NCBI GenBank assembly: GCA_965240325.2
Contig: OZ251235.1
Location: 1,178,001 to 1,242,000 of the forward strand
Direction of reading: 5' to 3'
Origin: Rebecca billardiae RCC1528
Taxonomy: Eukaryota > Protista > Haptophyta
Length of the DNA: 64,000 nucleotides
Numbering within the stretch: the first letter of the stretch is position 1; each line of letters begins with the position of its first letter. Position numbers and translations under genes: made by a program. Positions 3,341 through 14,517 of this stretch are shown here, piece after piece. The notes beneath the pieces are model-generated. The model searched no databases. It was not told where the DNA came from and saw only the letters and a list, made by a program, of their open reading frames with translations.

Positions 3341-4146
3341 TATTGGGTAAACGCGAGCTCCGAGCGTCTCGAGCCCTGCTAAAAGCTCACCGGCACGTCC
3401 TCGGGCGCGTCGTCGGTGACGCCCACGAAGGCAATCTCGACCCTCGCTCCTCTGACGAGCGAAGCTAACCTCCCGCCGAGCTCTTTTCGGGTCCGGCGGG
3501 GTGACCCGGCGTTTGCTGGCCCGGCTCGGGGAATCTCAATGATTCCGAGCCGCACGCCCCGTGCGTCAACCAATCACAGGTGTTCCCGACGCACCGCCGT
3601 AACTGCTGGTCGCACACGGTTTCTGGATCCGTGTACCCGTTGAATCCGGACGTCCTCGTCCGTGATGAATTTCTGGATGAAACGGTCGTGTTTGCGTTCT
3701 CGAGAACTCCAACACGCTTCCACGATGGCGGCCGGGCCATGCCCGTGCGACGTCACCGTGCCGCGCTGCGCCGGGCCGTACCGCCCGCGCACGCGCCGCG
3801 TCCGTGTCGCTCCGCGTCCGCGCTGCCGCGTCCGCGCTCCGCGTCCACGTCGATCCGCGCCAGCGCTGCTGCGCTCGCGCTCCTGCCGCCGCGCGCGCCG
3901 CGCGCGCGCGCCGNNNNNNNNNNNNNNNNNNNNNNNNNNNNNNNNNNNNNNNNNNNNNNNNNNNNNNNNNNNNNNNNNNNNNNNNNNNNNNNNNNNNNNN
4001 NNNNNNNNNNNNNGCGCGCGCGCCGCCAGAGCCAGCCACTGCTCCGTAGCTGATGCCGCCGGCCCGCCTGGTGCGGCGCCGGCCCTGACGTCCCAGCGGC
4101 GACGCCATCTGCTGAGATGCGCGCCCCAGGCTGCGTCAGCTCAACA
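3341..4146 (-). repeat. 3' LTR (contains a 100-N assembly gap at 3914-4013)
   Basis: Matches 10105-10798 apart from one visible substitution (CACCGGCAC vs CACCTGCAC) and the gap. Reads TGTTG...CAATA on the minus strand. Confidence 0.95.
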
Positions 4147-4182: not shown

Positions 4183-7100
4183 TTACCGCGCGCGCGTCGG
4201 GTGTCGCTCCACCATGATGGCGTCGACGTGCCGCTTGAACGTCGCACCGTCCGTCGCCTTCGTCATGATGTCAGAGTGGTTGAGTGAGGTGTGTACCTTG
4301 ACCACCTTCACCTTGCCACCCTCCTGCGCGTCACGCACATAGTGATGCTTGATCTCGATGTGCTTCGAGCGCTTGTGGTGCACAGGATTCTCTACGAGGT
4401 CGATAGCCCCTTTGTTGTCCTCTCGCACCTCCGTCGCGGCCCGCGGCGGCTGCCGCATGGACTCGAGTATGCTCCGCAAGTAGCTCACCTCGCGGCAGCA
4501 ATCGCTCAGCGCGACGTACTCCGCCTCCGTCGAGCTCAGCGAGACTGTACCTTGCAGCCCGCTGTGCCACGACACCGGCGCCCCATTGTAGAACACAATG
4601 TATCCACCCGTCGACCTGCCCTTGGTCTCCACCGGATTGCTTGCCCAATCGGAGTCAGCGAAAGCAAGTAGGTCGGGGTGCTCGGAATCTGTTGCAAACT
4701 TGAACAAGATTCCCAATCGCGGGCATCCACGTAAGTAGCGCAGCACACGCTTCGCACTTACCAGATCCACCGCCCGCGGACATGACATGCGTCGCGTCAG
4801 CATGTTCACCGCGTGCGCGATGTCCGGCCGCGCCGTGACCATCGCAAACATGAGACATCCCACCATCGCCTGGTAGTTCTCAATCTCCGCGCGCTGCAGC
4901 AACGCCTCGTCGTCGTCGCTCAGCTGCGCCCGCGCCGCCGGCTCCGGCGTGCGCGCCGGCGTGCTCGCGTTCAAACCGAACCGCTGAAGCACGCTCTCGA
5001 CGTACGGCCCCAGATGCATCAGGATGCCGTCGTCATGAACTTCAAACACGGCGCCCAGGAACTTATCGAGCCGCTCACTCAGCTTGATCTCGTAGTGCTC
5101 CTTCAGGTCAGCCGCCAGCTTCTCCACCGCGCGCGCGTCGCGCGTCAGGTTGAGAAACAGCAAGTCGTCGACAAAGCCGCCCGCGATGATGAACTCGCCC
5201 GGCGCCGACTCCTTGACGTAGATGCACGGCGCACTCGGACACTCCGAGAAGCCGCGCGCGAGCAGCTGGGTGCGGTGCGTGCGATGCCACGCGCGCCCAG
5301 ACTGGCGTAGGCCCGGATACGCCTTGAGGCTCCGGCCCACGACTTTGTACCCCGACGGCGCCTGCGTGCTCGGCACGTAGCCCGGCGGGAATGAGAAGAG
5401 AGGCCGCTCATCCGGCTTCAACTCCGAGTTGAGGTACGCGTCCTTGACGTCGCCCTTCGACAGTATGCCCAGCGCCGCAACCGACGCTGCACCCCCAAGT
5501 CAACTCTCGCGCCAGCCTGCTGAGCGGCGATCGCCACGAGTAGTCGCACTTGTTCCGGCCGGATCGTCGGAGCAAAGACCTCCTGAAAGTCGATCCCCGG
5601 CCGCTGTAGGTTCCCCAGTAGCACCGACCGCGCCTTGAAGCGCGTCACCTCGCCCTCCGGGTTCGACTTCACGTCAAAGACCCACTGGCTCGGCAACACC
5701 CGCGTGCCCTCCGGAACCACCACCTCCTCCGAGGTGCCGAGCAACTTGTGACCTTCCAAGTGCTCGAGCATGGCGCCCTGCCACTGGGGCGCCTCCGCCG
5801 ACCGCATCGCCTCGCGATAGTTCGTCGGCACCTTCACGTTGATCTTCTGGAACACCGACGCGGCGCTGACGACGGCAGTAAGCAGCTGCGGCCGTCGGCG
5901 CGACGTCCGATCCCTGCGAAGCGGATCGTGTCCCATATCCAGACCGGGCGGCGGCGCGTCCTCGATCACGCCGTCGTCACCGTCTGCGCCGCGCGGCGGC
6001 CCGCCAGCATCTGCTGCGGTCCCGCGCCGTGATTCCGTCGGCGGTATCTGATCCTGCCGACCCGGCTGCGTCATCGACGCGCCTGCCCCGCCACGCCCGC
6101 CCTGCGGCGTCGGCGTCGACGGCTGTGCGCCCGCGCTGCTGCACCCGCGTTGTCCCGCGTCCACGCTGCTGCGCCCGCGCCCCGACGTTGACGCATCTGC
6201 GTCGTCGTCGTACCCGACGTCGAACTCTGTCGCGTCGTCATTCCCGGCGTCGGCTGGCGTCTCGCCACCGTCGCCGTCCTCGTCCTCACCGTCGGCGTCA
6301 CCGCCGACTGGACGATGTCCGCCGCTTACCGCGGCGCCGTCACCATCACCCACGTACGCGCCACCGTCAGGTGCGCCCAGCGACGAGTGCCCCCCCTCGA
6401 CCAGGTCGGTCTCGTCGATGCGTACATCACGTGAGTGAACGAGACGTCCGTCGTCTAAACGACATACGTACCCAAGCACGTAGCGCCATGTACCGCGCCA
6501 CTGCACGCCGTGCCCACCCCAGAGATAGACACGTCCGGGTAGTGCGCGCTGCTTCAGCTGCCCCAATGCATTGCGCCGTGCGCCCAGCATCAGCACGCGG
6601 CAGCGCGCGCCAAACGCCACGTGATGCTTCCACGTCGGACGTTTGCCAAAGAACAGCTCATCCGGCGTGAGCCACTCAATGTCTCCATCGTCACGAATGA
6701 TACCACGTGACGCCAGTCGATTGCGCGACGCGCATGCGTGCCACGCCGCGTAGTGCCAATCGACCCTCGAGACTCCACGCGCAACGACCGTGGCGCGCAG
6801 TCTCGACTTCAGCGTGCGGATAGCGCGTTCCGCCACGCCATTCGAGCTCGGCGAGTCGGGCGCCGACGTGACCGTCGACGAGAACCCAAGCTTCGCCAGC
6901 TCACCCTCGACGTACGTACTCAGCAACGTCGAGCCACCGTCGGTGTGAATATGGCGTCGCGCCATAGTACACCCCGACGCCAGGACCCAATGCGACATGT
7001 GCATGGCCCCTGTTCCAAGCAACTGCGCGTACCAGCGGAATGCCCGACCAACCTCGGCGTCATCCAAGCTGCGTAGCGCGTACACTTGCCATCGACGTGA

Positions 7101-7469: not shown

Positions 7470-7486
7470 CTGCGCGGGTTCCGGGC

Positions 7487-10105
7487 TTAGGCGTTTGGGG
7501 GCGGCGCAGCGCCAACGCGCCCCCGCCCCGCGCCCACGCGCCGCACTGGCGCCCTGCGCCGTGCGCGCGCCTCCGCCGGCGCATCGCCGACGTCCGGCCC
7601 CACCTGGCGCCGTACGATCTCGGCGCGCAGCGTGGAATCGCGCGGCAGCTGCACGACGCCGCCTCCCAGCGCCGTAAAGTCCGCAGTGTTGCCGCGCTGC
7701 GAGTAGTGGAACTCGATGCCTGCGTCCGCGCAGTGCTCGACCGACAGCAGCGGCGCCGTGACGCGCCGCGACGCCCACGCCTCGATCTCGAGCGTGAGGA
7801 CCTTGTCGCTGTCATCGTCCGCCGCAAGCTTGACCACCAGGGTCCCGCGGTGAGTGACCCGCTCCCGCGCACCGTTCCCCCACTCGATCTGACATGCGCC
7901 GTCCACCGGGGTAAGATTCGTCAAATCCTCGGCCATGGCGATGTTCTTCCGTGCGCCAGTGTCAAACACCAACGCCCGCGTGTTGTCCTCCGGCGGCGCC
8001 ACGCGTGCCTCGGCCGCCCGCGCCGCGACGATCTCGATGTCCTCGTCGCGCTGCGCTCTGCCGCCGATAGCCGCGCCAATAGGCGCCAAGCCGAGTCCGG
8101 CGCCGGCGCCGCCGCCGTCTCCGGCGTCAGCGTCACCGTCGCCACCAACGGCGCCGTCTGGCTCGTCCCCCTGCTCGGGAGCGAACGCGACCTGCGTGCG
8201 GACCGTGCCGCCGCCGTTGCCATTACCGACCACGGCGCGGGTGCTGCCCCCGCCACCGCCGCCGCCACCGCCACCGCCGCTCCGATGTGAGCCACGGCTG
8301 CGATCCGACCGCGTCGACGCCGCGTCATCGCCAGCGTTCGAGTCGCGATCAGCCTGCGTCACCTGCGGGCAGTAACGCTTGATATGCCCCACGGCGCCGC
8401 ACTTGTAGCAGCGCGGCCCGTGCGCGTCGTCGGAGTCGTCCTGGCCTCCGCGGCCGGCGCCGCGGCCAGTGCCGCCGCCGCCACAGCCACGACCTCCGCC
8501 GCCGCCACCACGGCCAGCCGGCGACGTCGTGTCGCCGCCGCCGCCACCCGCCGACGCCGCCGCCGCCTGCGCCAGGCGGAGCCCGTCGATTGGGTGCGCG
8601 CGGGTAGCGCCGCCGCCTCCTGGCGTGCGGCCACCCGCCCCTGGGCGCCCAGGGCCGCCGCGGTCAACCCGCTTGCCCTTGGAGAAGTCCCAGTCCTCGA
8701 ACTTGCCGTTGAGCTCGTGCACGAGCTCCTGCACGTCGAAGTTCGTCACGGTCCTGTAGTCCTTCGACTCGTACCGCGTCCGCATCTCGATGCCCGCGCC
8801 CACCGGCGGAATGAACTCGATGAGCCGCGCAAGCATCTCCGCCGCTGGCGCTGCGTCACTCAGCTCCTGCAGCAGCACGTGGTTGTGCTGTAGCACCTGG
8901 AAGAGCTCGAGTGCGCCGACGCCGTCCTTGCCGCAGTCCGGCAGGACCGTCCGATGCCAGCGTGCCCGCACCGACATGTACTTCCGCATGTCGTCGGGCT
9001 TGCGCATGCGCAGGATCGCCTTCCACAGGTACAGGAACTCGCGCCCCGGCGTAAGTGCGCCCAGGCGCGCGCGCTCCTCCTGCACCTCCGGCTGCGTCTC
9101 CATGAGGCGGTTGATGTGCTGCCACGCAGCCTCCGTCACCCACGACCGCAGCTCGGTGCGTAAGAAAGCCGTCCCTTTCTCGTACTGCGCCCCGGCGTAC
9201 TTGGCGGGGTCCGCCTCGTCGCCGTCCGGCGCTGCCTCCAACACGCTCTGTCGGAGCTTGATGTCCAGCATGGCGTGCTCGCTCGCCTGCCGCTCATACA
9301 TCTGTTCCTCGGTCTCGCGCTCGCGGCGGTAGAGCTCGCGCGCGCGCGGATCGAGCGTCACGGCAGCGCCGCCCGCGGGCGCCGCGCCACCGATCCCGCC
9401 GGCGCCGCCCGTAGGCACCGCGCCGACGCCGGCGCCGCCCACAGGCGTCGCGCCGTCAGTCCCAGCCGGCGCACCTGCCGCGCCGCCTGTGCCCACACCC
9501 GGACCGGGTGTACCGGCCGCCGGACCCGGAAAAATTCCGGATCCGCCGCCCGCCGCCGGACCTGAACCCGGTCCGGTCGCCGTCGGGCCGCCCGGAGTGG
9601 CTAAACCACTCCCCGCGCCCGCCGAGGCAGCCTGCGCGTAGCTTGGCGCCTGCCTCGCCCCCGCCGCCGCCGCCGCGCGTTCCGCCGCGGCCCGGCGCTC
9701 GGCGTGCTCGCGGCGCTCGTGCTCGTGGCGATGATCGAGCAGCCGCTGCTGCAGCGCGTAGTTCTCACGCGCCAGGTCCATCCGCTCGGCACTGACCTTG
9801 ATCATCTTCGCCGCGGATGGGTTGAATGTCTCCCACGTCGAGTTGTACTCCTCGAGCGTGTTGATGCGGTGCTCCGCGTTCGGGCCGTGCGTCACGATGA
9901 TGCCGTTCAGTGCGGACATCGTAGCACCTTGCCCCGCCGGAAGCGCCGCCAGCCTGCTCGCCGATTGCGCGAGCCAGCGCTGCTGATTGCCCTTGTCGTT
10001 GAGCATCCCCACGTCGACCGAGCCGTGCATCCGGCCGCTCGTGCCCATCGGCGCGATCGATGAGAAAGCGCCGCGCGTACGATCCCTCCCGATCGCTGCA
10101 TGCAT
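7487..10105 (-). CDS. gag: Copia Gag-protease (872 aa)
   Basis: Zinc knuckle CYKCGAVGHIKRYC and aspartic protease LVFDTGARKNI...LLSV. Ends at TAA 7489-7487. Confidence 0.9.
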   Translation of the reverse strand: MHAAIGRDRTRGAFSSIAPMGTSGRMHGSVDVGMLNDKGNQQRWLAQSASRLAALPAGQGATMSALNGIIVTHGPNAEHRINTLEEYNSTWETFNPSAAKMIKVSAERMDLARENYALQQRLLDHRHEHERREHAERRAAAERAAAAAGARQAPSYAQAASAGAGSGLATPGGPTATGPGSGPAAGGGSGIFPGPAAGTPGPGVGTGGAAGAPAGTDGATPVGGAGVGAVPTGGAGGIGGAAPAGGAAVTLDPRARELYRRERETEEQMYERQASEHAMLDIKLRQSVLEAAPDGDEADPAKYAGAQYEKGTAFLRTELRSWVTEAAWQHINRLMETQPEVQEERARLGALTPGREFLYLWKAILRMRKPDDMRKYMSVRARWHRTVLPDCGKDGVGALELFQVLQHNHVLLQELSDAAPAAEMLARLIEFIPPVGAGIEMRTRYESKDYRTVTNFDVQELVHELNGKFEDWDFSKGKRVDRGGPGRPGAGGRTPGGGGATRAHPIDGLRLAQAAAASAGGGGGDTTSPAGRGGGGGGRGCGGGGTGRGAGRGGQDDSDDAHGPRCYKCGAVGHIKRYCPQVTQADRDSNAGDDAASTRSDRSRGSHRSGGGGGGGGGGGSTRAVVGNGNGGGTVRTQVAFAPEQGDEPDGAVGGDGDADAGDGGGAGAGLGLAPIGAAIGGRAQRDEDIEIVAARAAEARVAPPEDNTRALVFDTGARKNIAMAEDLTNLTPVDGACQIEWGNGARERVTHRGTLVVKLAADDDSDKVLTLEIEAWASRRVTAPLLSVEHCADAGIEFHYSQRGNTADFTALGGGVVQLPRDSTLRAEIVRRQVGPDVGDAPAEARARRRAPVRRVGAGRGRVGAAPPPNA

Positions 10106-10798: not shown

Positions 10799-11301
10799 TA
10801 ATAACTCCTATACTACTTCTACTCACTAACTTACTACCGACTACGGAGCCTCAACGATGCTGATATCCCGGTTCTGTGCCGCTGTGACCAATCGTTCGGC
10901 CGCCGTTGGCGTCCGCCGGGCCCGCCGACAAATGAGTAATCACTCTCGACGTAGTAGTAGACTCAATCAACAGCCCGGCGCAGCGCCCTCTGGCCGCACA
11001 GGCTTCGCGATCCTCAACACGGCGGAGGCTGCGCCTGCGAAGCCGCCGCACGCGTCTCACAGCCGGTGACGACTGACGTAGCCATATGCGCGCGCGGTAT
11101 ACCGTACAGTATAGGCTGCCGCCGCCCGCTGGCGCCGGCGGCTCACCGCTCAGGCGCGATTGGCAGGCAGCGTAGTCATGTCGTATATCGATTAATACTC
11201 TGTACTCATCAGCGCCGGCCGCTGACGTCGGCATGTTATAATCATCGCACATATATATATGAAAACGCTTGCCCGTTGCATACTGTGTCACGACCACGTC
11301 G

Positions 11302-11432
<131 letters not shown>

Positions 11433-11706
11433 AGAGAGAGAGATATGTCGAATACGATTAATGTCCCGTGCGCCGCGCAGCTCGGGAATTAATAATCGCA
11501 GGATGGCAGGAAAGTATTACTATTAGCAGCGCGCTACTGTTTATTATTTACTATTTATTAGGCAGTCGTCAGCGAATGTAGTTATTATAGATGAATTACG
11601 AAAAATCAATTAAGGCCCGCCATATCGTCAATAATAAGCCCGAAGCACTTGCCAAGCGGTTCTGAGCAGAGTCCAAGTCGCGACTAAGCGCGCGCCACCG
11701 AGGGCA

Positions 11707-14128: not shown

Positions 14129-14298
14129 GCGGACATCATGTGTAGTGGTGATGTGCATCACCGGCTAAGTGCACCGTGCTCTCTGAAACTTTGAGTCTGA
14201 AACTGACAACTCATGTATACGCTCATCAAATAATATAATAAGCAGTCTGTATTTGAAGCTATCCGATGCTGCTGCTCGCGTCAGAGACAGCGTCGTGG

Positions 14299-14299
<1 letters not shown>

Positions 14300-14380
<81 letters not shown>

Positions 14381-14517
14381 CTCAGTCTATACATGAGTAT
14401 AGACTATTAGTTTCAGACTGAAACTAATAATATATATACATATATATATATATATATAGCTCAGTCTCGGCAGATGCTTAATGCGCTGAATAATATATAT
14501 ATATATATATATATATA
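14300..14517. repeat. (TA)n microsatellite cluster with two adjacent short hairpins
   Basis: TA runs flank AGTCTATAC-atga-GTATAGACT and TATTAGTTTCAG-a-CTGAAACTAATA (14405-14429). Confidence 0.85.

Follow-up and report, generated by a model that had tools for sequence, protein, structure and literature searches.

A putative programmed -1 ribosomal frameshift between protease and integrase in a copia-type retrotransposon of the haptophyte Rebecca billardiae

Introduction

The window analyzed here is a stretch of 64,000 nucleotides from the genome of the haptophyte Rebecca billardiae RCC1528 (contig OZ251235.1, positions 1,178,001 to 1,242,000). Its minus strand carries a long terminal repeat (LTR) retrotransposon of the Ty1/copia type in which the reading frame for Gag and protease (PR) is closed by a stop codon, and in which integrase (INT), reverse transcriptase (RT) and RNase H (RH) are encoded in the -1 frame. 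We propose that programmed -1 ribosomal frameshifting yields Pol of this element as a fusion protein, Gag-PR-Pol, and we put the probability of this at about 85%. The proposal is built on sequence comparisons, i.e., on a slippery heptamer one codon ahead of the stop, on the conservation of frames and heptamer in related lineages, and on a downstream RNA stem which is predicted to recruit codons of the integrase.

An earlier note on this DNA had assigned the element to the copia order, and the LTRs, the domain order and the RVT_2 matches all agree with this. The note explained the junction between PR and INT primarily by a host-type intron; -1 slippage at the heptamer C CCA AAC was its secondary option. 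The comparison of heptamers, frames and stems favours the latter.

The junction between protease and integrase

The Gag-PR frame (frame 0; 10105-7487, minus strand) closes at TAA 7489-7487. The INT-RT-RNase H frame (7778-4183, minus strand) stands in the -1 relation to Gag-PR and is open from 7778 onward. A -1 frame overlapping the end of the upstream frame is the canonical arrangement for this type of recoding, and it is present in the window and in 10 other lineages.

Shortly before the stop lies the proposed shift site, the heptamer C CCA AAC (7499-7493, minus strand), whose register is X XXY YYZ. The 887 codons of the Gag-PR frame contain no other in-frame XXXYYYZ sequence, and the heptamer is invariant in 30 genomic copies. 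A single codon (GCC) separates it from the stop; the spacer GCCUAA of 6 nt (7492-7487, minus strand) includes the Gag-PR stop codon itself. The earlier note had listed the stop, the -1 frame of pol, the heptamer with its register, and three splice-like sites, i.e., donors at 7603 and 7546 and an acceptor at 7470. We find each of them in place.

How would Pol be produced? Most ribosomes would finish Gag-PR at UAA 7489-7487. A minority would slip one base back on C CCA AAC (7499-7493), with tRNA-Pro in the P site exchanging CCA for CCC and tRNA-Asn in the A site exchanging AAC for AAA, and would then read the pol frame as ...PPPN-RLSPEPAQVR... into the integrase. If P- and A-site tRNAs slip simultaneously, the predicted junction peptide would carry Asn, and the peptide ...PK-RLSPE suggested before has to be corrected to ...PPPN-RLSPE. 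The slip would be promoted by a stem beginning 6 nt past the heptamer, in which the arm 7486-7463 pairs with the W-S-x-R-T-G-T codons at 7388-7362. Gag-PR would be the major and Gag-PR-INT-RT-RH the minor product. A high Gag-PR:Pol ratio would result from one unspliced RNA which would also serve as the genome. That ribosomes shift at this site, and with what frequency, we infer from the features described below.

Copies within the genome

The search of the R. billardiae genome covered 72 Mb in 41 contigs. It yielded at least 39 copies of the element, 30 of which were aligned at the junction. The stop, the frames, the splice-like sites and the heptamer are identical in 30 of 30 aligned copies, with no insertion or deletion between 7660 and 7455. 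The arrangement is therefore no private indel, the explanation which the earlier note had singled out for a check against other copies. The note was right in taking the stop that separates PR from INT for part of the design of the element, rather than for decay.

The 30 aligned copies form two subfamilies. The second (at least 17 copies, 92.6-95.4% identical over an 801-nt query, deletion counted) is distinguished by a 30-nt in-frame deletion at 7454-7425 (minus strand). The segment absent from it is a Thr-rich linker in the apical part of the stem-loop.

The window copy has one defect of its own. Near 5492 the RT frame is broken by 2 surplus nt that are private to this copy; the 38 other copies measure 699 nt in this region compared to 701 nt. 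The 2-nt difference at 5492 is also seen in contigs of a single sequencing run (X1). In most copies the pol frame is open over 1258 or 1248 aa, as opposed to 797 + 438 aa in the window copy, where it is split at about 5492-5421. The RVT_2 domain (PF07727) of the window copy is recovered as two pieces of 54.6 and 53.2 bits; unbroken copies reach about 119 bits (cut-off 31.6). The break (about 5500-5420) was considered as a second intron or recoding site and rejected, because it is a private surplus of 2 nt in the window copy.

A first search of the genome returned a single more distant match, L061 (contig C3, 4360001-4370000). It is a deletion derivative without the junction and was set aside. 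The locus is rearranged, has internal deletions and contains pol fragments more than once; possible interpretations are a non-autonomous derivative and a nested insertion.

Relatives and conservation of the heptamer

A genome-wide scan for RVT_2 identified at least five copia families in R. billardiae. Three of them have single frames of 2,000-2,290 aa. In two, Gag-PR and Pol are in different frames: the family of the window element and a sister family, D (L062), with pol frames of about 1,160 aa. In family D, INT-RT stands at -1 relative to Gag-PR (frame 0), and the upstream frame ends with G GGA AAC, one codon and TAG. The geometry is that of the window family in different letters, and the tail is otherwise unalignable.

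Searching with the integrase protein retrieved six relatives of 41-64% identity; their contigs (L063-L068) belong to samples in Logan, ENA and JGI. Four further lineages (L069/70, L071, L072 and L073) came from a metagenome scan. Altogether, nine lineages originate from samples other than R. billardiae, with integrases that are 36-64% identical, and in all nine pol is in the -1 frame. In L063-L068 a separate upstream open reading frame (ORF) ends with a heptamer directly followed by TAA or TAG; the heptamer is G GGA AAG in L063/64 and L067, and G GGA AAC in L065, L066 and L068. L072 has G GGA AAC, one codon and then the stop. In L069/70 and L073 the stop follows 18 nt after G GGA AAC, and in L071 it follows 45 nt after A AAA AAC. 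Three degenerate or incomplete contigs were of no use here: L074 and L075 are degenerate and unusable for the junction, and L076 does not contain it.

Thus, a terminal in-frame heptamer of the type X XXA AAZ is located 0-45 nt before the gag-PR stop in 11 of 11 lineages. These terminal heptamers account for 11 of the 14 in-frame XXXYYYZ sequences (Y = A or T) in the 5,114 gag-PR codons of the 11 lineages. An in-frame X XXY YYZ candidate within the overlap, conserved among relatives, is what a canonical -1 site is expected to display, and such heptamers are present here and in the relatives. In two cases the overlap itself is narrow. The -1 frame opens just 37 nt before the stop in L063 and 49 nt before it in L069, and therefore a shift must fall at the heptamer.

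The protease motif is in the upstream ORF throughout the clade (alignment A3). In the same alignment the active-site triplet of L062, L065 and L066 is D-S-A or D-T-A and not D-T/S-G.

One may argue that the family is simply defective, i.e., that a frame break became fixed in a non-autonomous master copy which is mobilized in trans by another copia element. The window copy does have one true private break, in RT, and the single-long-ORF copia families of the genome could supply the proteins. Such a master copy would leave open why the sister family and the nine lineages of other samples have the -1 layout together with an in-frame heptamer. Moreover, both long frames are open in most copies of the window family, and the single-ORF families score 150-201 bits on RVT_2, compared to about 119 bits here. 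We regard a defective family as extremely improbable.

The downstream RNA stem

The stimulatory element predicted for the window copy is a stem-loop domain of 125 nt (7486-7362, minus strand). Its 5' arm (7486-7463) begins with GCCCG. Its 3' arm (7388-7362) consists of the codons for the integrase motif T-W-S-V-R-T-G-T, and the apical insert between the arms is variable. The domain folds with -57.5 kcal/mol and z -3.1. Short windows of 93 nt following the heptamer contain no stem (z +0.9); it emerges in folds that reach as far as the integrase motif.

For the seven lineages of the closer group, separate folds were made of the stretch between the heptamer and a point shortly beyond the integrase motif W-S/A-x-R-T/A-G-T (R-L-G-T in family D). 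One architecture was obtained in 7 of 7. The closing helix starts 6-7 nt past the heptamer; in three of the seven folds a few extra pairs begin 3 nt past it. In this helix CGGGC, from the R-T/A-G-T codons, is the partner of GCCCG; in family D the codons are R-L-G-T and the partner is UGGGC. Another 15-20 pairs join the poorly conserved linker to the W-S-x-R codons, and the insert which they enclose varies in length. It is in this apical insert that the second subfamily has its 30-nt deletion. A canonical -1 site requires a stable structure within 5-9 nt downstream, and the models predict one here.

Do the two arms belong together? Between lineages, pairs are altered on both sides with pairing kept, e.g., A-U/U-A/C-G, G-C/A-U and C-G/U-A. 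Within the family, two changes in the 5' arm preserve pairing (G.U to A-U and A-U to G.U). The 5' and 3' arms of each lineage pair better than 1,000 shuffles (z -2.1 to -4.4; the arm duplex of the window copy has z -4.4). Cognate arms also beat arms swapped between lineages: only 4 of 5,040 permutations were as good (p about 0.0008). RNAalifold applied to the raw MAFFT alignment recovers the closing helix alone, because the inserts differ in length. The frames, the heptamer, their conservation and a covarying predicted stem are, then, matters of observation.

L069 and L073 replace the long stem by a strong local hairpin a few nt past the heptamer. In both (L069 2938-3000; L073 368-430) the gag-PR stop is situated in the hairpin loop, and a few stem positions differ on both sides.

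Several points weigh against a programmed frameshift. On the raw MAFFT alignment RNAalifold gives only 2 compensatory pairs. The z of the whole 145-nt fold is modest in several relatives (-1.5 to +0.6), and the fold of L072 shows no convincing structure. In a GC-rich genome such as this one, stems are easily formed. GCCCG/CGGGC, the core of the closing helix, does not vary and is thus without covariation information. As to the heptamer, C CCA AAC is rarer than G GGA AAC. The 11 lineages are kin by descent, and counts across them are not fully independent. Finally, the sole public run that contains sequence of the element (X1) is of unrecorded type and consists of assembled contigs.

Splicing and other routes to Pol

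The intron of the earlier note spans 134 nt (7603-7470, minus strand), or 77 nt if counted from the second donor at 7546. The splice-like sites read CAG/GTGGGG, with the G at 7603, CCA/GTGCGG at 7546, and CGCAG/G ending at 7470. According to this explanation the spliceosome excises 7603-7470 or 7546-7470 and with it the stop, so that PR is joined to INT, and the unspliced RNA serves for Gag-PR and as the genome; intron retention would set the Gag-PR:Pol ratio. The arithmetic of the note is correct. Both lengths are 2 mod 3, both donors are in phase 0, and the frame downstream is that of INT, so that removing 134 or 77 nt does fit PR to INT. The GT and AG sites exist in all aligned copies and are phase-compatible. 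There is also precedent, as Drosophila copia regulates Gag versus Pol by splicing. The same regulation is described for plant copia elements (PMC5580714).

Nevertheless, the signals are no better than chance. With 9 GT upstream of the stop and 5 AG downstream of it, 45 GT..AG pairs can be formed, 17 of which restore the frame; about one third is expected. Five GTR donors fit one CAG acceptor at phase 0. Splice-like sites that are in frame occur at chance level because GT sits in frame-0 Val codons of Gag-PR. With copies that are 93-100% identical, the presence of the sites throughout the family is uninformative. The codons of family D opposite the donor at 7603 are without GT according to an alignment of the PR tails, in which the linkers are too diverged for strict positional homology. 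None of the at least 39 copies lacks the 134 or 77 nt, and the contigs of run X1 keep the segment and contain no joints; what differs in them are variants between copies. The proposed acceptor falls within the 5' arm of the conserved stem. An intron has no need of the heptamer-stop geometry which is conserved over 11 lineages. On these grounds the frameshift is preferred to the host-type intron, which we consider very unlikely.

Pol might also be made without frameshifting. Ribosomes could initiate independently or reinitiate once Gag-PR is terminated, or the polymerase could slip on the A-run during transcription. The stop is indeed near the start of the pol coding region, and gene callers annotate pol of the relatives as a separate gene. 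The pol frame, however, has no AUG upstream of the conserved N-terminal motif of INT; independent initiation would therefore truncate the integrase. The A-run comprises 3 nt only, too short for known polymerase stuttering. Neither the strict X XXY YYZ register nor the stem spacing of 6-7 nt is explained by any of these routes, and we consider them very unlikely.

Comparison with known recoding systems

In Rous sarcoma virus/ALV, an alpharetrovirus, the protease ends the gag frame, pol is in the -1 frame, the heptamer A AAU UUA is placed at the stop, and the slip is stimulated by a stem located a few nt downstream. The resemblance of the window element to this gag-pro/pol junction is close: PR closes the gag frame, pol is in -1, a heptamer is at or near the stop, and a stem is predicted a few nt downstream. 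An excess of Gag-PR over Gag-PR-Pol from one unspliced RNA, here proposed, would be shared as well. The two differ in the heptamer, which is here C CCA AAC or G GGA AAC. In addition, conserved integrase codons, located up to 125 nt away, form the 3' arm of the stem in the present element. After the shift comes integrase and not RT because the element is copia-order.

Within the copia superfamily other strategies have been reported. The yeast elements Ty1, Ty2 and Ty4 shift +1, in Ty1 at CUU AGG C between gag and PR, driven by a rare tRNA; across the superfamily, Ty1-4 rely on +1 shifts, Tca2 has a stop codon, and Ty5 consists of a single ORF (PMC5009743, PMC7175516). The window element belongs to the same superfamily as Ty1, Ty2 and Ty4 and would share with them the aim, an excess of structural proteins. 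In contrast to Ty1, its shift would be -1, would use a tandem-slippage heptamer with RNA structure, and would occur after PR.

PEG10, a gene derived from Ty3/gypsy, uses the heptamer G GGA AAC. Its frameshifting involves a pseudoknot (PMC5009743). The heptamer is the one found in relatives of the window element, and a structured stimulator follows it. PEG10 differs in that its site is between gag and PR, in being a domesticated gene, and in the compact pseudoknot of its stimulator.

Plant Ty1/Copia elements, EVD and others, are alternatively spliced (Oberlin et al. 2017, PMC5580714). Splicing in plant and Drosophila copia is likewise an answer of the copia superfamily to the problem of the Gag:Pol ratio, and it is centred on the protease region. 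Those elements have a continuous frame and splicing yields a short gag-only RNA, whereas the frames of the window element are discontinuous and splicing finds no support. Gao et al. (2003, PMC1370496), as summarized in PMC5009743, list many animal LTR elements with pol in -1 and classical heptamers, and the few plant cases are +1. Our literature search, in which Gao et al. was represented by this summary, retrieved no description of a -1 site between PR and INT of a copia element or of copia recoding in haptophytes, which is no proof of novelty.

Architecture of the element

The entire element (10798-3341, minus strand), a young one, is 7.46 kb long. LTR comparison and domains identify gag, PR, INT, RT and RNase H, and the domain order gag-PR-INT-RT-RH makes it a Ty1/copia-type retrotransposon. 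The 5' LTR (10798-10105, minus strand) has 694 nt. The 3' LTR (4146-3341, minus strand) is preceded by a polypurine tract at 4155-4147. Outside an assembly gap the pair of LTRs (about 700 nt each) differ by 1 mismatch, and the element is flanked by a target-site duplication of 5 bp, TATTA, at 10803-10799 and 3340-3336. The gap of 100 N is at 3914-4013 within the 3' LTR, which for this reason can be compared with the 5' LTR only in part. The LTR termini are TG...TA instead of TG...CA. The final base of the 5' LTR is already part of the first gag-frame ATG, and no obvious tRNA primer-binding site is recognizable after the 5' LTR. Two arrays of 8-nt tandem repeats (11255-11452 and 14240-14433), about 2.9 kb apart, are located just outside the element.

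Pfam reports a zf-CCHC match, i.e., a CCHC zinc knuckle, in ORF1 and RVT_2 matches in the pol frames. The protease motif DTGA and the D,D,E residues of the integrase are readable in the translations. In the window copy RVT_2 is divided between two frames. The second frame carries its first part, together with the D,D,E core of the integrase, and the third frame its remainder and an RNase H-like tail. The integrase core is upstream of RVT_2, and the Pfam matches to rve_3/rve are sub-threshold.

Where an N-terminal HHCC zinc finger would be expected in the integrase (7421-6222, minus strand), neither His nor Cys is conserved in an alignment of 8 clade members (alignment A2). The missing HHCC marks a divergent clade. 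The motif is a typical and not a defining feature, so membership in the Pseudoviridae stands.

Concluding remarks

An exotic reading, a copia element regulated by an intron, gives way to an ordinary one which is well supported, a -1 frameshift consisting of a heptamer and a stem. Splicing and frameshifting could in principle both act on the same 134-nt segment. The ordinary reading is of interest because of where it is encountered. Among copia elements, the best-known arrangements are +1 shifts, bypass of a stop codon, splicing and single ORFs. Here, an entire clade from algae and environmental samples would use the retroviral -1 device, sited after the protease. There is a practical aspect to this as well, since gene callers presently split such elements into two genes.

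Considered jointly, the -1 shift between Gag-PR and Pol, the long-range stem with integrase codons and the integrase without HHCC may define an undescribed deep copia clade of marine/planktonic algae, a suggestion which we advance tentatively. If it is true, the 3' arm in the integrase codons would lock the constraints on protein and RNA together. The comparative set at hand comprises 11 lineages, three types of heptamer and a covarying stem that is anchored in integrase codons. It would be a natural test case for the evolution of -1 stimulators inside coding sequence.

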